Source: Podarcis bocagei
Lineage: Eukaryota
Assembly (NCBI GenBank): GCA_964188305.1
Contig: OZ076889.1
Direction: 5' to 3' (one strand)
Length of the DNA stretch: 64,000 bases
Position numbers and translations under genes: made by a program. Shown piece by piece: positions 1 to 60,343 of the stretch (positions within the stretch are counted from its first letter, which is position 1; each line of letters starts with the position of its first letter). The notes below the pieces were generated by a model. That model did not search any database. It was given only the letters and a program-made list of their open reading frames with translations, and had not been told where the DNA came from.

Positions 1-2676
1 AGGAAAGGAGGAGGAGTGGCGTTATATGTCAGGGATGTGTATACCTGTGAAGAGATCCAAGATTTAGAACCTCAAAGCCAAAGTGAGAGCATTTGGGTCA
101 AAATTAAGGGAGAGAAGAATAACAGAGACCTCATTGTGGGAGTTTACTATAGATCCCCAAGCCAAACGGAGGACATAGATGATGCCTTCCTGGAACAGAT
201 GGCCAAGCATGCAAAAAGAAGGGAGATAGTAGTAATGGGGGACTTCAATTACCCGGATATTTGTTGGATGTCAAACTCAGCCAAGAGCATAAGGTCAAAC
301 AGATTCCTCACTGTCCTTGCAGACAACTTCATTGTCCAGAAAGTGGGAGAAGCAACAAGAGGAACAGCCATTTTAGATCTAGTCCTAACCAATGTTGATG
401 ACCTGGTTAGTGGGGTAGAAGTGGAAGGATCATTAGGCGCGAGTGATCATGCTCTTCTGAAGTTTACTATACAGCGGAAAGGAGCAGCCAAGCATACTAG
501 GACTCAATTTCTTGACTTTAAGAAAGCCGACTTCATAAAACTTAGGGAAGTGCTGGGTGAGATCCCATGGACAGTAATACTAAAAGGAAAGGGAGTTCAT
601 GATGGCTGGGAGTTTGTTAAGAGGGAGATAGTAAAAGCACAACTTCAGGCAATACCAATGAGACGGAAACATGGAAGGTGCCTAAAGAAGCCAGGGTGGC
701 TATCTAAAGGACTTTTAACTGAGTTAAGATTTAAAAAGCATGTGTACAAAAAATGGAAAAGGGGGGAAACCACCAAAGAGGAATTCAAACAAATAGCCAG
801 CACATGTAGACACAAAGTCAGAAAAGCTAAAGCACAGAATGAACTCAGGCTTGCTAGAGAGGTTAAAAGCAACAAAAAAGGCTTTTATGGGTATGTCTGT
901 AGCAAAAGGAAGAACAAAGAAACAGTGGGGTCACTCAGAGGAGAAGATGGAGAAATGCAAACAGGGACACAGAAAGGGCTGAACTACTCAATGCCTTCTT
1001 TGCCTTAGTCTTCTCCGATAAAGAAAACAATGCCCGACCTGAAGAATTTGGAACAAATGATTCAGCAGAGGAAACACAGCCCAGAATAACTAAGGATACA
1101 AGAGTACAAGAATACTTGGCTAGTTTAGATGTATTCAAGTCTCCAGGGCCAGATGAACTGCATCCAAGAGTATTAAAAGAACTGGCAGATGTGATCTCAG
1201 AAGCACTGGCAGTCATCTTTGAGAATTCCTGGAGAGCAGGCGAAGTCCCGGCAGACTGGAGGAGGGCAAATGTTTTCCCTATTTTCAAAAAGGGGGGAAG
1301 AGAGGACCCAAATAATTACCGCCCAGTCAGTCTGACATCAATACCAGGGAAGATTCTGGAGCAGATCATTAAGCAAACAGTCTGTGAGCACCTAGAAAGG
1401 AATGCTGTGATCACCAATAGTCAGCATGGATTTCTGAAAAATAAGTCATGTCAGACTAACCTGATCTCATTTTTTGACAGAATTACAAGCCTGGTAGATG
1501 AAGGGAACGCAGTGGATGTAGCCTACCTTGATTTCAGCAAGGCATTTGACAAGGTGCCCCATGATATTCTTGTAAAGAAGCTGGTAAAATGCGGTCTTGA
1601 CTATGCTACCACTCAGTGGATTTGTAACTGGCTGACTGACTGAATCCAAAGGGTGCTCATCAATGGTTCCTCTTCATCCTGGAGAAGAGTGACTAGTGGG
1701 GTGCCACAGGGTTCTGTCTTGGGCCCGGTCTTATTCAAAATCTTTATCAACGACTTGGATGATGGACTCAAGGGCATCCTGATCAAATTTGCAGATGACA
1801 CCAAACTGGGAGGGGTGGCTAACACCCCAGAGGACAGGATCACACTTCAAAATGACCTTGACAGATTAGAGAACTGGGCACAAACAAACAAAATGAATTT
1901 TAACAGGGAGAAATGTAAAGTATTGCACTTGGGCAAAAAAAATGAGAGGCACAAATACAAGATGGGTGACACCTGGCTTGAGAGCAGTACATGTGAAAAG
2001 GATCTAGGAGTCTTGGTTGACCAGAAACTTGACATGAGCCAACAGTGTGACGCGGCAGCTAAAAAAGCCAATGCAATTCTGGGCTGCATCAATAGGAGTA
2101 TAGCATCTAGATCAAGGGAAGTAATAGTGCCACTGTATTCTGCTCTGGTCAGACCTCACCTGGAGTACTGTGTCCAGTTCTGGGCACCACAGTTCCAGAA
2201 GGACACTGACAAACTGGAACGTGTCCAGAGGAGGGCAACCAAAATGGTCAAAGGCCTGGAAACGATGCCTTATGAGGAATGGCTAAGGGAGCTTGGCATG
2301 TTTAGCCTGGAGAAGAGGAGGTTAAGGGGTGATATGATAGCCATGTTCAAATATATAAAAGGATGTCATATAGAGGAGGGAGAAAGGTTGTTTTCTGCTG
2401 CTCCAGAGAAGCGGACACGGAGCAATGGATCCAAACTACAAGAAAGAAGATTCCACCTAAACATTAGGAAGAACTTCCTGACAGTAAGAGCTGTTCGACA
2501 GTGGAATTTGCTGCCAAGGAGTGTGGTGGAGTCTCCTACTTTGGAGGTCTTTAAGCAGAGGCTTGACAACCATATGTCAGGAGTGCTCTGATGGTGTTTC
2601 CTGCTTGGCAGGGGGTTGGACTCAATGGCCCTTGTGGTCTATTCCAACTCTATGATTCTATGATTCTATGATTCTA
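1..2676 (+). mobile_element. CR1 LINE, young copy running off the left edge: APE endonuclease + RT ORF2 with two lesions, 3' UTR and (TATGATTC)n tail
   Basis: ORFs 16-1008 (GDFNYPDI, SDH endonuclease motifs), 1116-1643 and 1653-2591 ([18 protein letters not shown]). 1-bp deletion at ~965 and CGA>TGA at 1641-1643 relative to the copy at 24490-26702. Octamer tail at 2651-2676. Confidence 0.97.
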
Positions 2677-4046
2677 ACATCAAAAACAGGATCTGTGCAC
2701 AACAGCACTCTCCCTCATGTGATCCCTAGCAACTGGTATTCATGGGTATACTGTCTCCAAAAGTGGAGGTAGAACCTGAAGATAAATATTACTGTAATGG
2801 ATATTCTTATGATTATCAAAAGTCAGTGAAGTCTCATCTGGTATACAATCCTAAGAAGCTCTTCTATGGAAGAGTATTGTCTATTTATTTTAGTTCAGCT
2901 TGTGAAAGAGAAGATTTTAATATATTACACCCATTAAATCCTACTATACCTGGGTTGTGGGGCAAAGATAAGCTGAATAGTGATGTTCTTGTGCAAATAA
3001 CTATCTGTCTGTTACTGTGAAGGAAAGGTAAAAGTATTTTGGGATTTTCTGCCTCAAGTGTCAAAATGATTTAAGTGGCTTAGGGTACAATGCACTTTGT
3101 GTTGTTCTTGGGTGGGTGTGCAATTAGCTGTTTCATTTCAGGCACCACATTTTGCCCAGATGCTTCCCTCCCTGCAGCTCCCCACTCATTGTGCATTGTA
3201 GATTGTAAACAAGTTGAGAAAAGGGACCTATGTGCATTTCCTACATAATGCTGTAAGGTGTTGTGCATGCTGATAGCTCAGCTGTAATGTGGATATGTTA
3301 TTATGCTTTATAATTTTACTGCTTTGTTGCTTTCTTGGTAAATAACTCTGAGATGCTGTGTGAAAAGTTAACTAGAAATGTTTTAGATAAATGCACATTT
3401 ACTTTGTGTAGTTTATCAGATATATTTGCTGTAGATTGAAGTCTGTTTTTACGCCACGTTGGCAGATTCCCTGTTTTAAAAAATGGCACCACAGTTATTT
3501 TTACAGGTGTTGGGTTGTTGTTTTTTAACACCATCAGCAAATGGGTAACTGCTTGTGTTGGTTTGAACATGTGCACTGTCCTATGCAGTGGGAACTCCTG
3601 CACAATCCAACGTATGTGTGCTCCACTGGGCTGCCCAAGAGGCAGGATGAGGCAGATGCCTCACATTGCACACCCCAGGGCTGCAATGAACCCCCCAGGG
3701 CACAGCCCAGCTTTGCCACCTGGTACTCTGGTCTAGGGGCAGATAGGGACCGGGGTTAAAACTCTGCAGAATGCCTCCCCTACTGCCGAGTAAGCAAGAG
3801 GGGAGGCATTCTGCCGCCCAGCTTTTTTACTACACAGGAGGGGGAAGAAGTCCCCCCAGTCAAGCAATGTGGTGAAGCTTTGGACCAGCTTTCCCCAAAG
3901 GAAGAAGCTGGTGCAAAGCCCTTCCACTGAATGGGGAGGGGGTATCTGGAGAAGCTCTTATGGAGACCCCCTCAATTGTGGGGGCAGCAATGAAGTATTT
4001 CACCTCAGGTGCGAAAACGCTTCAGACTTCACTTGGGCAGGGGCAC

Positions 4047-4135
4047 TAGGGTTGCCATATTTCAAAAAGTGAACATCTGGGCAAAAATGTTGTTGACCTT
4101 TTTTTAGTTTTGCTTTTTTTTTTTTGGTTTTTTTT
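4047..4135. mobile_element. hAT (Blackjack-type) MITE end, interrupted by the 4136-4869 unit and probably resuming at ~4870-4915
   Basis: TAGGGTTGCCATATTTCAAAAAGTGAA matches the reverse complement of the right end of the MITE at 34944-35089. Confidence 0.6.
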
Positions 4136-4869
4136 TTGCGTGTTCAGACCCAGAAACCTCCCCCTAAATAAATTCACACTTGACTCACACATGGTTTGGT
4201 TTTTGGCAGAATTTCAGCCACAACTTTCTTGATTACAGAAGGTAACTGGTTGCATAGGCTCTGGTTCGACTAGCTGCCTGCCATGCAGGTAGCGCTGACC
4301 CAGGGCACCAGCAGAGGTCAGCCAAGGATGAACACCTGGATAAGCGGAAAGCCAGGCATGGGCTAACTCCGCCACCCAAATGTCCCCCTGGACTCAGGCA
4401 CGGGCACAACCCCCTCACAGGGGTTGACCAAACCATCAAGTCCCTGGATTCCTTTAACGGAATACCCTTCACATAGTGATGGCGAGACCGTTCTCTCATG
4501 CCTATCACATGAACCAGTGCCTATCCGCAACCTTACAAGTTGTGACGAATTGCTACGTGGCAGCGAAACCCAAATGGCAACAGCCAATCAGCCAAGTGGG
4601 GGAAATTCCTGCTGTGCCCCTGTCCCAACGACAGACGACACACGGCGGCATAGCAAGGTCAAGTGCAAAGCCCTAAAAGTAGGGAGAGGTGTGGGGGGTT
4701 CTGAATGTACGCGCCGAAAGAGGAAGCTCTGGGTCATGTGCATGGGCATAAATAGGTCCCTCAAACCATTTGGACTGTGCCAGATTTGAGGGACCAACCA
4801 ATCGGGTGTTGTGGTCAACCAATTGTACCCACCACAATATGTGTCCTCTTTAAAGGAGGACCCGATTTG
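4136..4869 (-). mobile_element. Structured LTR-like unit, copy A (candidate DIRS/Ngaro-type terminal repeat)
   Basis: Shares GACCTTGCTATG, AGGAATT, CGTAGCAA..CGTCACAACTT, GCCATCAC, GGGTATTCC..GGAATCC and CTGTAATCAA(G)AAAGTTGTGGC blocks with 36316-37074. TATTTAT at 4754-4748. CAA at both ends. Confidence 0.7.
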
Positions 4870-5823
4870 GCAATTTTGAGCTATTTTTATGAAAAATCGG
4901 CAAAAACAACACTGCTGAGGTTTTGGAAACACAATATCAGGAGCAGGAGGTGTGCTCCCACTCTCTATCCATGCATTTTACATCATCTATAGAGGGCTCT
5001 GACATTCCTTCACTTCAGCTCTTTAAGGAGATAAAACCAAGTTGTGGTCTACTGACAGGGTTGCCAAGCAATAACTGGAAAATGTGTCATGTCAAAGTGG
5101 GAGGGATCTCAGCACAGCTTAAGTTCCACATCCTATATTTAAGTTCTTGCCTTGTTCATGTAACATTTTGAGTGTGATTTCCTACGACAGGTAAAAATAA
5201 GATTGAGGAAGGTACGGGTTTGATGAACCACACCTGCAGTTTTGCCCACTTGCGTGGATACTTTTAAGGAGCAGAACAGGCAACCCTGTTGACTGACTGT
5301 GGATATTTTGAATTATAGGTATTTTAGCAGCCAATGATGAGAACCCATGCGTACAGTAATTTATAGAGAGTGCTTGGTTAAAATTATCTCTGGAGATGCT
5401 GGGCTTGGAATGCAAGGGTTAAAACCAAAATAAAGTAAAATTTGTTTGGCTTTTTATGTGTGAACAGTTTTGCAATGCAATAGTAGTAGAACAAAGTGCT
5501 TGATTAAAAAATACAAGAAAAATCACCATTCTACTTCATATAAGAAGACATTTCCATTTATTTTACTTTTGTCATACCCTGAAGCTGCTCTGTTCATTTA
5601 ACACCTTTAATAGAATTCAGAAAGTGTGCTAAATGGAAAATGTAGTTTGTTCATTTGTTTCTTTTCTGTTCTTGAAATGAAGGGAGATGGGGCCATTATT
5701 CTGAATCTTTTTGACTGGTTTTGGTTTTAAGTGAATATTTCTCTGCACACACCCATCTTTCCAATACACATCACTCAGAATATTAGATCTATACCTTAAA
5801 ACACATATTGTCTCTCTTCAAGG

Positions 5824-17259: not shown

Positions 17260-17403
17260 GATTCTTACAGAGTGGGGGGAGTTAAGAATACAGTTCAGAA
17301 TATGGAAGAGCTCTCGGGCACACACATTAGCACACTGTTCAAAAGTATGGTTACTGGAAATTGGTGTCTTGACCACTCAACACTGAGTCTACTTTGTCTA
17401 GAG

Positions 17404-17540
17404 CATTGTTTCCCAAACTTGGGTTTCCAGCTGTTTTTGGAATACAACTCACATCATCCCTAGCTAGCGGGACCAGTGGTCAGGGATGATGGGAATTGTA
17501 GTACAAAAAATAGCTAGAGACTCAAGTCTGGGAAACAATG
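17404..17540. mobile_element. hAT-Charlie (URR1-like) palindromic MITE
   Basis: TIR CATTGTTTCCCA, perfect 8-bp TSD GTCTAGAG, CATCATCCC..GGGATGATGGGAATTGTAGT core. Confidence 0.9.
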
Positions 17541-24060: not shown

Positions 24061-24489
24061 AACTGATGTTGTTGTTACTGCTACTACTACTACTAATGGG
24101 CAGTGCCTGACACACTGAATCTAAAAAGTGTTCTGTTGTTGTTTGTTTGTCTTTTTAATGGAAAGTGTAATTTTTGAGTTTGGACCAGACACATCAAAAA
24201 TCATGTGAAGTCACACCAAAGTCACATTTGGTCTGCCATCCTGATTCAGAACAGTGTTTGGCATCCAAATGTTGGCAAAGAGTGCCACTCCCACCTCACG
24301 AACCCTCATTCTAAGTATGGCAATGATATCTCGAGAGGCAGACAAACCCATGCCAAAAAATTGGGCCAAGTTACACAAAAGTAACGTTTCAGTCTGCTAT
24401 ATTGATTCAAAATGGCTGCTAGGATCCAAACACCAATGAAAACTTCCACCCTCATATTGAGAGCACTCAGCCAAATTTGGTGATGATAT

Positions 24490-26702
24490 TCATAGAATCA
24501 TAGAATCATAGAGTTGGAAGAGACCACAAGGGCCATCGAGTCCAACCCCCTGCCAAGCAGGAAACACCATCAGAGCACTCCTGACATATGGTTTTCAAGC
24601 CTCTGCTTAAAGACCTCCAAAGTAGGAGACTCCACCACACTCCTTGGCAGCAAATTCCACTGTCGAACAGCTCTTACTGTCAGGAAGTTCTTCCTAATGT
24701 TTAGGTGGAATCTTCTTTCTTGTAGTTTGCATCCATTGTTCCGTGTCCGCTTCTCTGGAGCAGCAGAAAACAACCTTTCTCCCTCCTCTATGTGACATCC
24801 TTTTATATATTTGAACATGGCTATCATATCACCCCTTAACCTCCTCTTCTCCAGGCTAAACATGCCCAGCTCCCTTAGCTGTTCCTCATAAGGCATCGTT
24901 TCCAGGCCTTTGACCATTTTGGTTGCCCTCCTCTGGACACGTTCCAGTTTGTCAGTGTCCTTCTTGAATTGTGGTGCCCAGAACTGGACACAGTACTCCA
25001 GGTGAGGTCTGACCAGAGCAGAATACAGTGGCACTGTTACTTCCCTTGATCTAGATACTATACTCCTATTTATGCAGCCCAGAATTGCATGGGCTTTTTT
25101 AGCTGCCGCGTCACACTGTTGGCTCATGTCAAGTTTGTGGTCAACCAAGACTCCTAGATCCTTTTCACATGTACTGCTCTCAAGCCAGGTGTCACCCATC
25201 TTGTATTTGTGCCTCTCATTTTTTTTTTTTTTTTTTTTGCCCAAGTGCAATACTTTACATTTCTCCCTGTTAAAATTCATCTTGTTTGTTTTGGCCCAGT
25301 TCTCTAATCTGTCAAGGTCATTTTGAAGTGTGATCCTGTCCTCTGGGGTGTTAGCCACCCCTCCCAGTTTGGTGTCATCTGCAAATTTGATCAGGATGCC
25401 CTTGAGTCCATCATCCAAGTCATTGATAAAGATGTTGAATAAGACCGGGCCCAAGACAGAACCCTGTGGCACCCCACTAGTCACTCTTCTCCAGGATGAA
25501 GAGGAACCATTGATGAGCACCCTTTGGGTTCGGTCAGTCAGCAAGTTACAAATCCACTGAGTGGTAGCATAGTCAAGACCGCATTTTACCAGCTTCTTTA
25601 CAAGAATATCATGGGGCACCTTGTCAAATGCCTTGCTGAAATCAAGGTAGGCTACATCCACTGCGTTCCCTTCATCTACCAGGCTTGTAATTCTGTCAAA
25701 AAACGAGATCAGGTTAGTCTGACATGACTTATTTTTCAGAAATCCATGCTGACTATTGGTGATCACAGCATTCCTTTCTAGGTGCTCACAGACTGTTTGC
25801 TTAATGATCTGCTCCAGAATCTTCCCTGGTATTGATGTCAGACTGACTGGGCGATAATTATTTGGGTCCTCTCTTTCCCCCTTTTTGAAAATAGGGACAA
25901 CATTTGCCCTCCTCCAGTCTGCCGGGACTTCGCCTGTTCTCCAGGAATTCTCAAAGATGACTGCCAGTGGTTCTGAGATCACATCTGCCAGTTCTTTTAA
26001 TACTCTTGGATGCAGTTCATCTGGCCCTGGAGACTTGAATACATCTAAACTAGCCAAGTATTCTTGTACTATCTCCTTAGTTATTCTGGGCTGTGTTTCC
26101 TTTGCTGAATCATTTGCTCCAAATTCTTCAGGTCGGGCATTGTTTTCTTTATCGGAGAAGACTGAGGCAAAGAAGGCATTGAGGAGTTCAGCCCTTTCTG
26201 TGTCCCCTGTTTGCATTTCAACATCTTCTCCTCTGAGTGACCCCACTGTTTCTTTGTTCTTCCTTTTGCTATGAACATACCCATAAAAGCCTTTTTTGTT
26301 GCTTTTAACCTCTCTAGCAAGCCTGAGTTCATTCTGTGCTTTAGCTTTTCTGACTTTGTGTCTACCCGGTTTGGCTATTTGTTTGAATTCCTCTTTGGTG
26401 GTTCCCCCCCTTTTCCATTTTTTGTACACATCCTTTTTTAATCTTAACTCAGTTAAAAGTTCTTTAGATAGCCAACCTGGCTTCTTTAGGCACCTTCCAT
26501 GTTCCCGTCTCATTGGTATTGCCTGACGTTGTGCTTTTACTATCTCCCTCTTAACAAACTCCCAGCCATCATGAACTCCCTTTCCTTTTAGTATTACTGT
26601 CCATGGGATCTCACCCAGCACTTCCCTAAATTTTATGAAGTCGGCTTTCTTAAAGTCAAGAAATTGAGTCCTAGTATGCTTGGCTGCTCCTTTCCGCTGT
26701 AT
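24490..26702 (-). mobile_element. CR1 LINE, young, 5'-truncated, with an uninterrupted ~710-codon ORF2 fragment (RT intact, endonuclease lost)
   Basis: ORF 24570-26708 nearly identical to the copy at 1-2676, FADD motif, (TATGATTC)n tail at 24490-24510, probable 9-bp TSD. Confidence 0.97.
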
Positions 26703-35471: not shown

Positions 35472-36366
35472 TAACATAGTTAATCTGTGCATAGCAAAAT
35501 CCAGAAAATGGTATAATCCAAAAGGGAGTTTCATTTTGATGTGCAAGCCAGCTGGGGAGCTTCAAATCTGCTTGATCTGCTGTCAAAGGTAGACCAAACA
35601 AATTCCTTTCTCATCCCTACCTGGACAAAAATATATGAAAATGTAGAGCATTTACTTGTCAAACAACAACTCTCATGGGGCAAAGGTCTCAAGGGGTGGG
35701 GAGCCTTCTCCAAAGACACTTGTAACTGATTACCTGCTTCTGCACCAAGCTGAGGGGAGCGTGTCCATAACTAAGTACCCCCTACCTTCCCAGTTTTAAT
35801 CTAATTATATGCAGATGCACAATAAATGCATAGGCACATATTGAAAGCTGAGCAATGCCTTCTATTTTGGGCTACAATCCTAACCTCCCTTCCCTAAGGG
35901 CAAGCCCCATTGAATTCAGAGGGACTTCTGACTAGTCATAGTAAGGTTTGCAGCCTAAAGTCTTGCATGCGCATTCTCATATGTTGCACATCAGAGACTC
36001 CTGGAGCTTCAAAGGAATTCTGCCCTGGACTGGAACCCAACGTTAAGTAGTTTCATATGGACCAGTTGGCTGATCTCTAGGTACCATATGGACAGATGCC
36101 GAAAGAACAATGTTGATAGTTCTTGTGTTATCACAAAAAAGACGGAGAGCTGTGATGAGGCGGGGCTGGACTGAGCTCAGCCAAAATGGTTGTTCTTTTG
36201 GCTAAAGTTGACATGTCATCTGTGGTGTTTGGGACACTGCTATATCCAGTGCTATTTTTCTAGAAAAATAGGTGCTGAACTCACAATGAACTCCTCCCTT
36301 GCTCTCTTAAAATGGTAAAGCCATTTCCGCCTTGGAGGAGATGGGGTTGCGGGCTAACTCCTCCCA

Positions 36367-36509
36367 CACGTGCGCGGGGGCTGGCCTTTGCCCCCGCGCG
36401 AGCAGGGAATCCCCGGGCGTGTCACCGAGCCAGCCAGCCAATCAGCTGGCCGGGGAGGTGGGGCCTGGCCTATTTAAGGGCGGGCACGCCCGGAGACCGC
36501 CCTCTTTCC
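36367..36509 (+). promoter_or_regulatory. Predicted Pol II promoter of unit B
   Basis: E-box CACGTG 36367-36372, kappaB-type GGGAATCCCC 36405-36414, CCAAT 36438-36442, GC-box-like 36452-36463, TATTTAA 36471-36477, CTCTTTCC at 36502 (31 nt after the TATA start). Confidence 0.55.
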
Positions 36510-36569
36510 ACCTGGGCAGCCGAGAGGTTTTCCCGTCCCACCCACCCTTAGGCTTAGCTAGACACGACC

Positions 36570-36669
36570 TTGCTATGGACTTCGGTTGGTCGCCGCAAGG
36601 GGCCTGGTAGGAATTTTTCCAAGTTGGCGCAATTTTAGCCTTTTGGTTTTTTCGCCTACCTCGTAGCAA
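36570..36669 (+). ncRNA. Candidate ENE-like (U-rich internal loop) RNA structure
   Basis: GGTAGG-AA-T5-CCAAG...TTTGG-T6-CG-CCTACC (36606-36660), inside an outer stem TTGCTATG/CGTAGCAA, with UUCG- and GCAA-capped side hairpins. Confidence 0.55.
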
Positions 36670-37324
36670 ACGTCACAACTTCCATGGTTTTGGCGGTTAG
36701 GCAATGGCAGGGGGAATTGTTATGCAAATGAGAGGGGGGAAGGAAGCGCCATCACCTTCCCCAAATAAAAGGGGTAGTCCGGTAGAGGACTCCGGGGGCG
36801 TTGCCTTGTCCGAAACCTAGGGAGGTAAGGGCCTCCGGCACGCCCCCGAGCGGTGACACCCGTGGGATCCTAGTTGGCATACTTCAACAGGACCCCCACG
36901 GTTTGTGTACAACCCTTCCCGGTCTCCATGCCGGGTAGTCGATAGGAGCCAATGCCTAAAGCCAATACCTTTCAATTCTGTAATCAATAAAGTTGTGGCC
37001 TTTTATGCCCATTAACCTAAAATATTGTGTCCAGTGTCTTCATTTCATATGGGGGGGGGAGACTTGCCACACAATGGTGCCCACCTGAGAGGTGCTGGAA
37101 CTGAGTTGCAGCTGGAAAAAAAGCCCTGGCTATATCCGTCATGTTGACTGCTCTGAGAAGGCCTCTCTGTAGTGACTCTCTATCACCAAAGAAAGTCATT
37201 TTGGGAAGAACATAATGGATGGAACACTGCTGCAGTCTGATGGTGAGCTTTTTCATCTGTTGTTTTGAGAAAGAGAGAGATGCCATCAGTACACTAAATA
37301 CTAATGGGAACTCTCTAGTTAATT

Positions 37325-39243: not shown

Positions 39244-39830
39244 GTTACATATAAATCAGACCCTTGATTTTTTTTTAAATGTTGCAAGCAATGTATTACT
39301 CTTTGCTCCCTAAATAAATTGAGAAATCTTCCTGTCATGTAGCCCTGTTACCATTCTTAATCGTTCTTTTATAATTAATCCTCAGAATAGTTAATAATGT
39401 AGATTCCATTCCTAGCTTTGAAATAATATCTAGTTCGGTGAATGTATGATGGATGCTTTTAATAAAGTCAGTAATTATCTTTTATTGTTGATGGGTGCTG
39501 GTTTATTTTTAATTGTTCTTTTTGTTCTTTTGTGGTTAGAGAGCACTAGAGTGTTGGGTTTGACAAAGGATTGAGCTATTTTTAAATCTTTATATAATGC
39601 GGCTACAATGAGGTTAACAACAGACTAATATAGATGGGAGGGGGGACATACAAAAAAAAATCAGTGTTTTTGAATGGTACCTAATCCAAAATGTATTTAA
39701 ATAGATCCAAGATGAATTATAACTATGTAAATTGCCTCTTGTGGTCATGATCTTAAAGGATTCATTTGCTAAAGGATGCTCTTCCCATGCCAATTGCATG
39801 TGCCCCAGGCCTAATCTACACCATCTAGAT

Positions 39831-39966
39831 CAGGCATAGGCAAACTCGGCCCTCTGGATGTTTTGAGACTACAACTTCCATCACCCCTAGCTAACAGGAC
39901 CAGTGGTCAGGGATGATGGGAATTTTAGTCTCAAAACATCTGAAGGGCCGAGTTTGCCTATGCCTG
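39831..39966. mobile_element. hAT-Charlie (URR1-like) palindromic MITE; an older relative lies at ~40042-40177
   Basis: Long TIR CAGGCATAGGCAAACTCGGCCCT, TSD ATCTAGAT/ATGCAGAT. Confidence 0.9.
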
Positions 39967-41477
39967 ATGCAGATCATACCATGCAGGAAGCAGAGGTGTG
40001 AATAAAACTGCCCGCGCCAGTGGCAGCTTCATGGTTTACCATCAGCCTTCTCCAACCTGGTCTCCTGCAGGTGTTATGGACTCCAATTCCCATCAGTTAC
40101 AGCCAGCATGGAAAATGGTCAAGGATGATGGGAATTGTAGTCCAAAACATCTGGAGTGTTAACAGGTTTGGGAAGATAATAGCTCACACAAATGAGATTA
40201 ACCACATATAATGAACAAAATAACCAACATTGCCAGTTAGTTTGGCCTAGAGGAGAAATGATTTCCTGGCCTCAAATGTGACAGTTGTGAATTATGAAGA
40301 ACGTAACGTCCTCACAGCTACATAAAAAGCCCTTCCAATGAATGGAAGGGAAATATTAGTATTTAAATACCTTTGTGAAGGAGGGTCAAAATAAATATAA
40401 GCTTTGAATCCCCATGCCTTGCAACTGAAAGACTAATTTTCTGCCTGATAGAACTCTGTCACATACTTCTAGACTAAAGCAGTAGAAGATAATATTCTTT
40501 GTTTATTTTGTGTTTCTTATACTATCTGTAAAATATGGCATCAGTTGTGTATATAAAATTGTAGCTTATACATTGCTCAAACAAGCAACATTCATAACCC
40601 TTCTCCTTGCATTTATGGTCAACAAAACGTTTCATACCCACGTTTCAAAGAGAAGGAAAACTGACTGAAATGAATACAAGGGATGTGAACCATGGAATTT
40701 TTTTTAAAAAAACTGATTGCTCTTTTTTCTACTGCAAGATTCTAATTCTGTGTGACCATATAATTTGGAGAATATTTTTGTTTGCTTTTTTTGAAGTATG
40801 ATTCCTTTTCAATTCAAACCACTTAAAATGTATAGTGTAGCTGTAGCTTTCAAAACAGAAAAAAGAGCTCTGGTCTTAAGTCTCTTGTCTATTTGATTCC
40901 TCCAGTGGTTTGAGTATCTTAAAAATCAGTTCTGCTCTGCTTTCATTACCAGGAGTTCTGTAGTTCCTGAATTTGATAGAATATGTTATACCACCTCAGC
41001 TTGCTTATTACAACATGGTAATGAGTTATTTTTCCTCAAGAACAGCCTGAGAACAAGCAAGAGAGGAGAATATATTTTCAGTCCTTTATTTTTAAATCAA
41101 TTGGCCGTCAATATATTAAAGTGTGAAATGTGTCTAGTCAGGTTCTGATCTTTGGAATGAAGGGCTTCCTTACCCAGTGCAGTATGGAGGCTTTATGCTA
41201 GGGATAGAAAACACTGCATGTCAGTAGTTACATAATTTAATGAAGTGCTGAAGCCACTACCACATTCATGCCTGTTTTTTGGAGGAAGACAATGGGCCAG
41301 TAAGTCTTGTGCAGCAATAACATCGAAAAAAGAAAAGCTGAAGAGCTGAAGCAGAACAACAGATAAAAATCCAAATAATAGGCAGGTGAAAGCTCAAGAA
41401 TATTACAAGATCAAGCCACGATTAAAATGACCTCACAGAGCAGACTCAGTAATAAGTAGTAAGTAAGAAAATAAGTA

Positions 41478-45978: not shown

Positions 45979-46851
45979 CTGATTCAAGGACCACCACCCT
46001 CCCCCACCTGCTTGGGGATAAGAAAGACACAAGGACACAGTATATAAGGTTAATGGGCTAGAAAAGGCCACAACTTTATTGATTACAGCATGTGAGAGGT
46101 ATTGGCTTAGGCATTGGATAAACAGCAGAGCTTGACTCTACCCCCTCAGGGAGGGGTGAGTCTAACAAGGGTTAACTACCAGTAGGGGGAGCCTGTTGAT
46201 GCAAATACAACTGTAAGCTCTCCCCTGATGTCACCGAGGGTCATGCCATGGCCCCCAGCCACAGCAGGGCATTGGACAGGATCCACGACCGCCGGATTCC
46301 TTTAATGGAATACCCATAAAGTGAAGGGGTAGGTGATGGCCACACCCTGCCCTTCCATACACCAGCAACATATTCCAATGCCTAACTGTCACACACTCTC
46401 ACCTCAAAATCAGCCCCGCTTCAAAAGTAATGCTAACACTGGGGAAATGGCAAGGCACACACACTCTCTCAGTCAGAATCATCCACCCAAGGGCAAAAAA
46501 ACCCCACACAGCCACGCCACCAAACCTCACAGCCGGAGCTGGTCACAAGCACCCACTTTGCAAGCTGCTGTTGCCTCCTGGAGCTTCCTTCTGCCTGCAA
46601 AAGAGCGAGCGACGACGTCCTGTCCTCCAGTCTTGACCTGTTGAAACCCGGCAGCACAATGAGGGGAAAGAGCTGCCGCGGCCGCATTTGAACAGCTAAA
46701 CCCCGCCCCCGAGCTTCCCTACAATTGGAAGACTAACTGGGGAGCGTGGTGCGGCAGCAATGACGGCAAGCAGGGGCCGGAACGCCCCCTGTGAAGTGCG
46801 AGAACGGCTCCAGATCGCAACCCCTCCCCTCCGGGAGGAGGAGAGGCTTTG
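45979..46851 (-). mobile_element. Structured LTR-like unit, copy C (candidate DIRS/Ngaro-type terminal repeat)
   Basis: Minus strand starts CAAAGCC..GGGGTTGCG and ends CCAATGCCTAAGCCAATACC..CTGTAATCAATAAAGTTGTGGCC..CCCATTAACCT..TGTGTCC, like copy B. The left boundary is approximate. Confidence 0.72.
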
Positions 46852-47487
46852 TAAACAACTCAGGCTCAAAGTCCTAGAAGACTCGCACACAACCTTGTCC
46901 TTGACAGCCTTGGACATCCAGGTGAAGGGATACCTGGCTACCGCTGTCAGGACCAAATAGCTTTGAGTAGGTGGAGTGTACAGGCCCCAAAGTATACCAG
47001 TTCCAGATCTCACTTACCATAGTAGTTTTGATATTCAAGTCTAGAAAAGCACTCTTTCACAACTGAAGGGTGGCCATGCAATATATAAGCATTTTAAAAA
47101 ATGGGGGTTCCACAATTAAAAACTCGCCCTCTCTGGTTGTCAACCACCTGAATTTGGTGGTACCCGAGGAAAGCCTCATCTGCTGACCTAAGTTCCCAGA
47201 CAGGTGGATATGGGAACAGGTGTGTTTTTTTCAGGTACCAAAGTCTCAGGCAGGTAGGGTGGTCGTAATGCTTGTATTCTCCTTGTGATTTAAGCTGGGT
47301 GGCAGTACATTTCCACACTTGCCTCCTTGTGAATAGTCCAAGTGCCTATTCCCGTAGGCAGGCCTTATTTGGTTATCCTTTTTGAATACAGCTGCTGGAT
47401 ATTCTAGAGCAGAGATGGGGAACGTGGCTTTCCAGATATTGTTAAACAGTAGCTCCCATCAGCACCAGCCAGCTGGGCACTATAGTT

Positions 47488-58700: not shown

Positions 58701-60157
58701 ATATTATTTCTTCAGTCAAACTGCCTTTACTTTGGCTCAATATTCTTTATCCTCCATTTAGCAAATAATGCACTTTTTAAAGGGAAAAAGAACTTATTTG
58801 GGTGTTGAGCAATTGGCTTAATTGTACTGGGGGTGGGCGGGAAGCAATAGTAATATCAAGGTGACATTCTTCATCGATATGGAGGGAAGGCAAAAGAAAT
58901 CACAATGAAATGGATAGCTGGGCTCCACCAAAATGCAGTCCAGAATCCCACCACCACTACCAAAGTGGTGGAAAATGGGTTTCTACAAGAAAGCAATTAT
59001 CTGATTGCTTCATCATTTGCCTTTCAACAATGTGGTGAACAATCCACATTCTACTGAGCAGAAAGGAAAACTGAGAATCCTCCCAGAGTAAAAAATAAAT
59101 TTAAAAATCACACTTCAAAGGTGTTTTTTTAAAAAGCCAGTCCAGGACACACATTCAGTTATGTGAAGATAACTCCTCAACAATTGAAATAAAAATCCCA
59201 GGCCTGTTTCTGTAAGCACCCAGCCATAACTATGGGGTGAGAAAGAGGAAAGGGGCTCTGTAGAGCAAATCCTAGAACAAACTCTGAGGAGCATCATAAG
59301 GGAATGTGCCTGTCTTTACTTGGGAAATGGCTACCTTACGGGCTCCATAGGCAGAATCAGTTTAAACTGGCTCCACCGAGCTCCAAGTTACCCTCACGCC
59401 AGTCCTGGTTCACCCTGTTCCAAGGTAATAAGGGAACAAATGATGGGTATTCAGTCCCAAAACAGCTCTAAAATAAACTTCTCTGTAAATTCTAAATACT
59501 GCAGTAGCTTCAGATGCCGTGTACAGCAAAAAGATGAAAAGAGAGAGGATTAAAAGCATTATGTGGATCATTTCTTCAGGATATTTAGAATCAGGCACAT
59601 TCCAGAGTGATCTCTCCTGTTACTGAGGCATTGTGGAATTCTGCATACTAGGTTTGTTAACCTCCTTCTGGAAACATTCTGCTGCTTCTCCAAATTGTCT
59701 TGGCTTCCTCCAGTTCAGGAGTATGGCCAAAAGCTCTTCTTATCCATTTTTTTTTTTAAATTGAATTGCTGAAGCAGTGCAAAGTGAAACTAATCTGGAT
59801 TGTACCACTGTAGACTGGAGGTGGGCAAGTGCATGACTGAATGTTCTGCCTACTAAAAAGTTATCTGCACACAGAAAGGAAAACGTCAGGGGGAAACGTT
59901 CTCGATTCACTGTCTCCCCGGTATAGAGATGGATGAACCCACTGAAGTCTGGCCCATTTGAGTTCTACATAGGGAGGTACATAAAATTCTGCAAGAAATA
60001 TGATTAAAAGCACATTGAGGCAGTCCGCAGGCTAAAGCACTGCCCTTTTTAAAAACCCTTTCTAAAGACTACCAAAATAATGTCACCTAAATATGTCACC
60101 CCAGCCTGGTGTAATTATTATGCAGGGCTTCTTACTGTCATACCCTTTGAGTTAGAG

Positions 60158-60293
60158 CAGGCATGGGCAAACTTGGCCCTTCAGATGTTTTGAGGCTACA
60201 ATTCCCATCATCCCTGACCACTGGTCCTGTTAGCTAGGATTGATGGGAGTTGTAGTCCCAAAACATCTGGACAGCCGAGTTTGCCTATGCCTG
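60158..60293. mobile_element. hAT-Charlie (URR1-like) palindromic MITE
   Basis: TIR CAGGCAT(G/A)GGCAAACT, TSD AGTTAGAG/AGTTAGCG. Inverted near-copy of 39831-39966. Confidence 0.9.
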
Positions 60294-60343
60294 AGTTAGC
60301 GTGATAGTACTTGTGTGGTGGCAGAGGCAGGGCGGAGTGGGGG

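Follow-up and report, generated by a model that had tools for sequence, protein, structure and literature searches.

ENEs are stem-loops in which a U-rich internal loop is bordered by G-C pairs; they are found in transcripts that end in poly(A) or contain an A tract, with which they form about five U-A-U triples together with A-minor contacts (PMC12501189, PMC13541005, PMC7583470). In mobile elements they lie behind hAT transposase genes, as in TWIFB1, and in transposable-element transcripts of plants and fungi (PMC13541005), and the transposon ENEs that have been cited come from plants, fungi, slime mould and one fish (PMC13541005, PMC7583470), the fish case being that of stickleback retroviruses (PMC7583470). 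An earlier reading of the present locus, made from the sequence only, had held that transposon-borne ENEs are reported mainly from plants and fungi, which is right, with the addition of the one fish case already cited (PMC7583470). In Evade RNA the ENE raises both stability and mobility, and the G-C pairs immediately beside the U tracts are essential (PMC12501189); the lower domains of double ENEs can have A-minor stems that are interrupted (PMC7583470).

The window analyzed here, a stretch of 64,000 nucleotides from contig OZ076889.1 of the lizard Podarcis bocagei (GCA_964188305.1), is free of N and contains three related copies of a repeat, termed A, B and C, of which copy B carries a hairpin domain with the outline of an ENE. 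The hAT ENEs of plants and fungi, such as that of rice TWIFB1 (Tycowski et al. 2016, cited in PMC13541005 and PMC7583470), resemble this domain in their hAT-type host, in the opposed U tracts between GC-rich stems and in preceding a poly(A) signal on the sense strand. Copy B differs from them in its amniote host, in possessing a single domain rather than the usual double domain of plants, in its AA/CG spacer, 3- or 4-way junction, 8-bp outer stem and distance of about 345 nt to the tail, and in that no transposase ORF was seen. The ENE of Evade (Copia93) in Arabidopsis likewise belongs to a transposon RNA, contains U-rich internal loops and is proposed to block deadenylation in favor of the element (PMC12501189). 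However, Evade belongs to the LTR retrotransposons and has four U tracts, placed in the spacer before its 3' LTR, and its ENE has been validated by melting, reporter and genetic tests (PMC12501189), whereas copy B is a DNA transposon with one pair of tracts and, as against both the Evade and the plant and fungal cases, is known from its sequence and a predicted fold.

Two further systems are comparable. The ENE of KSHV PAN RNA has a similar single-domain, U5-type loop with G-C pairs abutting one side of it, and in both cases the proposed partner is the 3' poly(A) tail in cis. In PAN the A-minor G-C pairs are placed directly below the loop, whereas in copy B a 2x2 mismatch intervenes, and the two show no match by sequence or covariance model. 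The MALAT1-like loci of lizards (Zhang et al. 2017, cited in PMC12941219) are comparable in that many triple-helix RNA stability elements are present in lizard genomes. In those loci a genomically encoded A-rich tract precedes a tRNA-like structure that RNase P cleaves (PMC12941219); copy B has instead a canonical AATAAA, no A-rich tract conserved in the family and no tRNA-like match.

The host element is probably a hAT-type transposon

The boundaries of the element were delineated from the target duplication, the inverted ends and a jump in read depth, and its terminal features are as follows:

36239-36246, no strand: left target-site duplication, 8 bp, GCTATATC; repeated at 37129-37136 (identity extending over 9 bases in total), the two occurrences marking the limits of the high-copy stretch
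36247-37128, plus strand: copy B, the whole probable non-autonomous hAT-type transposon, 882 bp
36247-36263, plus strand: left terminal inverted repeat, CAGTGCTATTTTTCTAG, matching the reverse complement of 37112-37128 at 14 of 17 bases
37112-37128, plus strand: right terminal inverted repeat, CTGGAAAAAAAGCCCTG, ending in GCCCTG
37129-37136, no strand: right copy of the target-site duplication

The match of CAGTGCTATTTTTCTAG to the reverse complement of the right end, CAGGGCTTTTTTTCCAG, was equaled by only 3 of 2000 shuffles. In a DNA run from the same or a sister species the depth is about 45 in the flanks and rises to 10^4-10^5 solely between about 36241 and about 37125, and the loose-end sequences of other copies finish with AAAAAGCCCTG (GCCCTG) before they diverge. 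The inverted ends begin with CAG and finish with CTG, fitting the CAG / YARNG termini of hAT elements; we take an 8-bp target duplication combined with such CAG...CTG ends to be the signature of the hAT superfamily. Copy B is thus probably an 882-bp non-autonomous DNA transposon of the hAT type. Pfam analysis of 33 ORFs, around A, B and C and elsewhere in the window, recovered LINE endonuclease and reverse-transcriptase domains only, with no transposase, gag, pol or recombinase; a tRNA scan recovered neither a partner for a primer-binding site nor a tRNA-like end, and the window holds no partner repeat in direct orientation.

These observations contradict one element of the sequence-only reading, which had placed the domain in a transposon terminal repeat and in the context of an amniote retroelement: the stretch is internal to an element that has its own 8-bp target duplication and hAT-like inverted ends, with no LTR partner, gag/pol or recombinase nearby. 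Accordingly, it is very improbable that the domain is an ENE in the terminal repeat of an LTR, DIRS or Ngaro-type retroelement of amniotes, where it would be present at both ends of the genomic RNA. The succession of a TATA box, about 500 nt and AATAAA does resemble a U3-R-U5 arrangement, but the 756-bp 'unit' so defined ends in TA..CA instead of TG..CA, has no inverted termini, target duplication of its own or partner repeat, and is bordered by the deletion breakpoints of a short form of the element (see below). Likewise, the adjoining segment TGGTGCCC, which looks like a primer-binding site, is the transposon's own subterminal part, homologous in copy A and lying inside the hAT-type ends, and no remnant of gag, pol or a recombinase is found nearby.

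The left subterminal part of copy B also contains a perfect 20-nt palindrome, CTATTTTTCTAGAAAAATAG (36252-36271), in the corresponding place of which copy A has ATTTTTCATAAAAATAG. By its form this palindrome may be a subterminal motif that binds a transposase or forms a hairpin.

Sequence and fold of the hairpin domain

The domain and its parts occupy the following positions:

36570-36669, plus strand: the reported 100-nt stretch, comprising an outer stem, a UUCG hairpin, a GCAA hairpin and an ENE-shaped arm
36606-36660, plus strand: the ENE-shaped arm, with a lower stem, AA+U5 (36612-18) facing U6+CG (36647-54), an upper stem (36619-23/36642-46) and an apical stem (36626-28/36638-40)
36629-36637, plus strand: the apical loop, which is the variable part

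On reading the sequence, the lower stem consists of GGTAGG (36606-11) and CCTACC (36655-60), the opposed tracts are T5 (36614-18) and T6 (36647-52), and the upper stem, CCAAG (36619-23) with TTTGG (36642-46), has four Watson-Crick pairs and one G-U. The whole is closed by an 8-bp outer stem of TTGCTATG (36570-77) and CGTAGCAA (36662-69) with one U-G pair, and includes the tetraloops UUCG (36581-84) and GCAA (36595-98), such that the arm projects from a 3- or 4-way junction. The stems, U tracts and tetraloops described by the sequence-only reading are therefore all present, and the architecture it had drawn coincides with the minimum-energy fold of the 100-mer as computed by RNAfold (-35.2 kcal/mol, z -2.5). 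The 55-nt inner arm on its own has an energy of -17.4 kcal/mol and a z of -3.3, and its fold makes up 80% of the ensemble (RNAfold).

When folded in contexts of 300, 511 and 756 nt the inner stems retain pair probabilities of at least 0.77, and mostly of at least 0.85, while the U tracts are unpaired with a probability of at least 0.87 in every context; the pair probability of the outer stem falls to 0.32-0.45 in the 511-nt context. A loop with about five U on each strand that is predicted to stay open is thus a property of copy B and, to the extent of the read data, of its near relatives. The immediate surroundings of the U tracts are asymmetric: on the upper side the pairs C36619-G36646 and C36620-G36645 abut them directly, and on the lower side an AA (36612-13) by CG (36653-54) mismatch separates them from the pair G36611-C36655. 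The evidence from the fold, together with the conservation described below, supports the view that the domain of copy B is a real and stable hairpin, kept within its subfamily, that has the outline of an ENE.

To gauge how rare this outline is, a descriptor, written after the fact, was defined with at least five U on both sides, an upper stem of at least 4 bp within 1 nt, a lower stem of at least 4 bp within 2 nt and at least two G-C pairs per stem. Over both strands of the window (128 kb) it matches a single site, the hairpin at 36570-36669. Dinucleotide shuffles yield 0.03 expected matches; in the fairer null, in which the 75 real T-run pairs are kept and their surroundings randomized, the expectation is 0.11 matches per 64 kb. 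At this rate the shape alone would be encountered thousands of times in a 1.5-Gb genome, and the weight of the hairpin hence rests on its context and conservation.

Conservation of the domain and its relatives in the window

The regions that bear on conservation are:

36566-36680, plus strand: conserved island, equivalent to the folded domain, delimited by position-wise depth
4538-4660, minus strand: copy A of the domain, a diverged relative, recovered by nhmmer, a covariance model and alignment
4855-4914, minus strand: left terminal part of copy A, CAGTGTTGTTTTTGCC...ATTTTTCATAAAAATAG, homologous to the left end of copy B by local alignment (5 of 2000 shuffles as good)
46024-46890, minus strand: copy C, a relative in which the middle block and the block with the poly(A) signal are present and a homologous hairpin is not

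The X4 depth rises from 2.2k at 36562-65 to 46k at 36569, drops to 8-12k in the apical loop (36629-36), reaches 234k at 36670 and declines to 23k at 36682. The edges of the island at about 36566-36680 thereby coincide with the domain that is closed by the outer stem. The 1-3-nt deletions listed for the domain concentrate at 36629-36636 and are seen in up to 16 of 34 RNA reads. Among the listed substitutions there are none in 36570-36669 as against nine in 36670-36714, from which it follows only that none of the listed majority alternatives to copy B falls within the hairpin. Of the 31-mers of copy B, about 30% are found in DNA runs under seven organism labels, indicating that the conserved blocks are common to related species.

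Within the window nhmmer recovers the domain in A and B alone. A covariance model built from B alone detects A with an E-value of 1.5e-5, and with the filters off all remaining matches have E-values of at least 1. In the model-guided alignment of A and B, 96% of the cells pair, compared with at most 58% when the partner is slid. Two pairs are changed on both sides, one in the lower stem from U-A to C-G and one in the upper stem from A-U to C-G, a covariation that 131 of 500 shuffles equal and that, coming from two sequences, has no statistical power. The sequence-only reading had noted that copy A (4550-4656, minus strand) keeps the same skeleton with different stem sequences and U3 tracts only, and both the sequence and the alignment bear this out: the lower stem is GCAG/CUGC, the internal loop is GAAUUUCC / UUUCG where that of B is AAUUUUU / UUUUUUCG, leaving a common core of AAUUU / UUUCG, and the U tracts are reduced to UUUCC / UUU. 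The minimum-energy fold of copy A pairs GAA with UUC, and its inner hairpin has a z of -0.05, no stabler than shuffles. At the corresponding place copy C carries a sequence that is unrelated to the domain and contains a U-loop hairpin. Neither of the old copies, A or C, yielded a convincing exact pair of target duplications or inverted ends; the right end of copy A (4095-4140, minus strand) is swollen by A-rich simple repeats (A11CCA12GCAAAACTA7), which render its terminus and target duplication unreadable.

This pattern of conservation raises a possible alternative, which we hold tentatively, namely that the domain is a structured RNA element other than a poly(A) clamp, whose U tracts or loop core, (GG)AAUUU / UUUCG(C), might serve as the docking site of a protein, from the host or the transposon, that acts in export, stability or translation, or might belong to a different tertiary motif. 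The correspondence of the island to the outer stem and the compensatory pairs would be accounted for by such a role, and the loops of A and B have AAUUU / UUUCG in common rather than the full U5/U6; moreover, neither the outer stem nor the flanking GACC / CGTCACAACT varies in sequence, which suggests sequence-specific recognition. Nevertheless, outside ENEs, to which they are specific, opposed U5/U6 tracts flanked by GC-rich stems are rare, the domain matches no known motif or Rfam family, and no protein partner can be named for it.

The internal module and the short form of the element

The interior of copy B, in which the domain is embedded, includes these features:

36316-37071, plus strand: internal module, missing from an abundant short (MITE-like) form, as delimited by read joints
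36438-36477, plus strand: CCAAT box (36438-42) and TATTTAA box (36471-77) in a GC-rich, promoter-like stretch with GC boxes, recognized by motif
36986-36991, plus strand: AATAAA inside CTGTAATCAATAAAGTTGTGGC, a block present in three copies of the window
37026-37041, plus strand: putative GU-rich downstream element, TTGTGTCCAGTGTCTT, recognized by composition

Many contigs and RNA reads contain joints from points between 36263 and 36315 onto 37071-37073. The letters between the joint points, together with the loose ends, represent a diverged version of 36278-36315, so that the effective junction is 36315/37072 and the joints point to an abundant short form of the same repeat that is devoid of 36316-37071. 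Its ends are at least 80% like copy B, while copy A is about 65% like copy B overall; as the ends and the interior of copy A have diverged together and the ends of the short form have remained this close to B, the short form would be a later internal-deletion derivative. From these sequence relationships it is best read as such, with the apparent borders of the 'unit' being its breakpoints. Splicing was considered as the origin of the 36315/37072 joint and rejected, as the skipped piece runs TA..CA. The short form itself looks MITE-like, with a joint at 36315/37072 that has no shared letters; it is known from reads and is absent from the window. Judging by the loose ends of the reads, its 126 nt (36247-36315 plus 37072-37128) are nearly palindromic, GAGGTGCCGGAACTCAC on the left facing GTGAGTTCCGGC on the right.

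The putative promoter and the poly(A) signal of the module both have counterparts in the relatives. Copy A has ATTGG and TATTTAT at the places that match the CCAAT and TATTTAA boxes of copy B, and the CTGTAATCAATAAAGTTGTGGC block occurs with 0-1 mismatch in three copies of the window against an expectation of 0, the depth at its AATAAA (36986-36991) being 205k. In copy B this AATAAA lies about 510 nt downstream of the promoter boxes. The hairpin is on the sense strand, approximately 70-170 nt past the predicted start, 326 nt upstream of AATAAA and about 345 nt upstream of the predicted tail. The sequence-only reading was accordingly correct in seeing AATAAA (36986-36991) downstream of the hairpin on the sense strand, to which the conserved block and the GU-rich element may be added.

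U-rich upstream elements are known to aid cleavage and polyadenylation, and the tracts could be an upstream enhancer of 3'-end processing at this AATAAA, with the hairpin merely presenting them. Such a function would suit their location, on the sense strand and ahead of a conserved poly(A) signal. It is nonetheless most unlikely, given that the usual distance of such elements from the signal is no more than about 100 nt, compared with a gap of about 330 nt here, that the tracts are shortened in copy A, and that two single-cell RNA runs gave no sign of cleavage at the site.

Two other segments between the hairpin and the poly(A)-signal block deserve mention. A second AATAAA (36764-36769), about 100 nt past the hairpin, is private to copy B, since most copies read C at 36763 and G at 36767. 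The genomic A tract at 36763-36770 was considered as a partner of the MALAT1 type and rejected, most copies differing at 36763 and 36767. An imperfect palindromic block, GGGTAnTCCnnTAAAGGAnTCC, is kept in all three diverged copies (36790-36815; 4445-4470, minus strand; 46290-46315, minus strand), in the version GGGTATTCC in A and C and GGGTAGTCC in B. It is more widely kept among the copies of the window than the hairpin domain, being present also in copy C, which has no hairpin.

RNA reads

Two single-cell RNA runs, each sampled to about 6%, yielded around 300 reads of the family apiece. Nearly all of these are only partly alignable, which indicates that they derive from copies other than B, and they are split equally between the strands. 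At this sampling no read falls on the private promoter region of copy B, no start or end pile-up or A-run loose end is seen near 37005, and no polyadenylated or strand-biased RNA of the family is seen in either run; fifteen reads continue past 37001 into diverged sequence of the family. The reads thus look like family copies read through inside host transcripts, and they neither show nor exclude autonomous polyadenylated transcripts in other tissues. A third run, which is RNA by presumption only, follows the depth profile of DNA and is uninformative.

Another alternative is that the domain has no function as RNA and is a passenger segment, its copies being alike through the recent amplification of particular deletion derivatives and its U runs and stems having come together by chance. 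Non-autonomous hAT copies need just their ends, the read joints attest to many deletion variants, the shape is expected by chance 0.11 times per window, copy C does without the hairpin, and sparse RNA reads from both strands are what read-through copies in host transcripts would give. What makes this alternative rather doubtful is that the edges of the island are those of the outer stem with the variability lying in the apical loop, that copy A, which is only about 65% alike, retains every helix with two compensatory changes, and that the fold has a z of -3.3 and is robust in context.

Searches for further copies and other repeats of the window

Searches of Rfam 15, a collection not confirmed to hold an ENE model, with a 1.4-kb segment, with 121 nt alone and with the whole window returned chance-level hits only and no plus-strand family on the hairpin at E-values up to 10. 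Searches with the pseudo-ORFs that run across the hairpin returned no homologues, the three hits of an exhaustive search being long proteins matched over short stretches only. Exact-pattern scans of metagenome, viral and prokaryote collections gave either 0 matches or 17 chance matches that share only 20-30 nt. In a sample of 42 kb from Podarcis lilfordi (GCA_947686815.1), reached via the LINE protein of the window, neither nhmmer nor the covariance model detected the hairpin, the short form or the block with the poly(A) signal, from which it appears that the family is too sparse for blind sampling.

The window includes repeats of other kinds. Two inverted LINE copies with endonuclease and reverse transcriptase (16-2698, plus strand, and 24463-26702, minus strand) are 96-98% complementary over about 2.2 kb; the latter retains an open frame of 713 aa, and their best protein matches are reverse transcriptases of Podarcis muralis at 95-97% identity. 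A repeat family of about 120-150 nt (17388-17511, 39815-39974 and 60142-60299) contains inverted arms in its interior, such as those at 39823-39888 and 39909-39974; it is MITE- or SINE-like and unrelated to the hairpin.

The hairpin as a candidate poly(A) clamp

We consider the hairpin of copy B a candidate ENE-type poly(A) clamp, a model to which we would assign a probability of about 0.3. Under this model the module would be transcribed from the CCAAT/TATA promoter over some 500 nt to the AATAAA with its GU-rich element, and the resulting RNA would be polyadenylated; the domain would presumably also be located in the 3' UTR of the transposase mRNA of an unseen autonomous parent. With the GC-rich stems keeping the U5 and U6 tracts of the long arm open, these tracts would then form a triple helix of U-A-U triples with the poly(A) tail that is added about 345 nt downstream, and the tail so clamped would be deadenylated more slowly, as in plant and fungal hAT ENEs such as TWIFB1.

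Several lines of evidence are consistent with this proposal. The fold is stable (z -3.3) and robust in longer contexts, the descriptor is matched at this site alone in 128 kb of both strands, and two C-G pairs abut the U tracts on their upper side. The island matches the outer stem, with the drop in depth and the listed indels falling in the apical loop; copy A, despite being about 65% alike, keeps all helices with two both-sided changes, and the block with the poly(A) signal is kept in three copies. Furthermore, the ends are of hAT type and ENEs are known in plant and fungal hAT elements: as they have been described behind hAT transposase genes, a hAT context in place of a retroelement raises the prior for an ENE.

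Against this have to be set the loop of copy A, which is just UUUCC / UUU on an arm with a z of -0.05, and copy C, which does not have the hairpin though it keeps other blocks. The AA by CG spacer below the U tracts is at odds with Evade, in which adjacent G-C pairs are essential, and there is no Rfam family match at E-values up to 10. The RNA reads are few, come from both strands and have no poly(A) ends, the hairpin is 345 nt from the predicted tail, and a non-autonomous DNA transposon does not depend on an RNA of its own for movement. Finally, the shape is expected about 0.1 times per 64 kb by chance, and two sequences give the covariation no statistical power.

Implications

A working ENE in an amniote hAT transposon, tentative as this is, would be the first poly(A)-tail clamp among the mobile elements of reptiles, birds and mammals, and the second among those of all animals. 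Were the domain not an ENE, it would still be a cleanly delimited, conserved RNA domain in an abundant transposon, which is of modest interest. Lizard hATs are known for horizontal transfer, and an ENE in this family, if true, would fit a picture in which intronless and possibly horizontally transferred hAT transposase genes gain ENEs for the stability of their mRNA. It would also tie in with the unusual load of triple-helix RNAs in lizards and would provide a compact stability element of vertebrate origin to test. If validated, it would extend the RNA-stabilizing strategy of ENEs to the amniotes.
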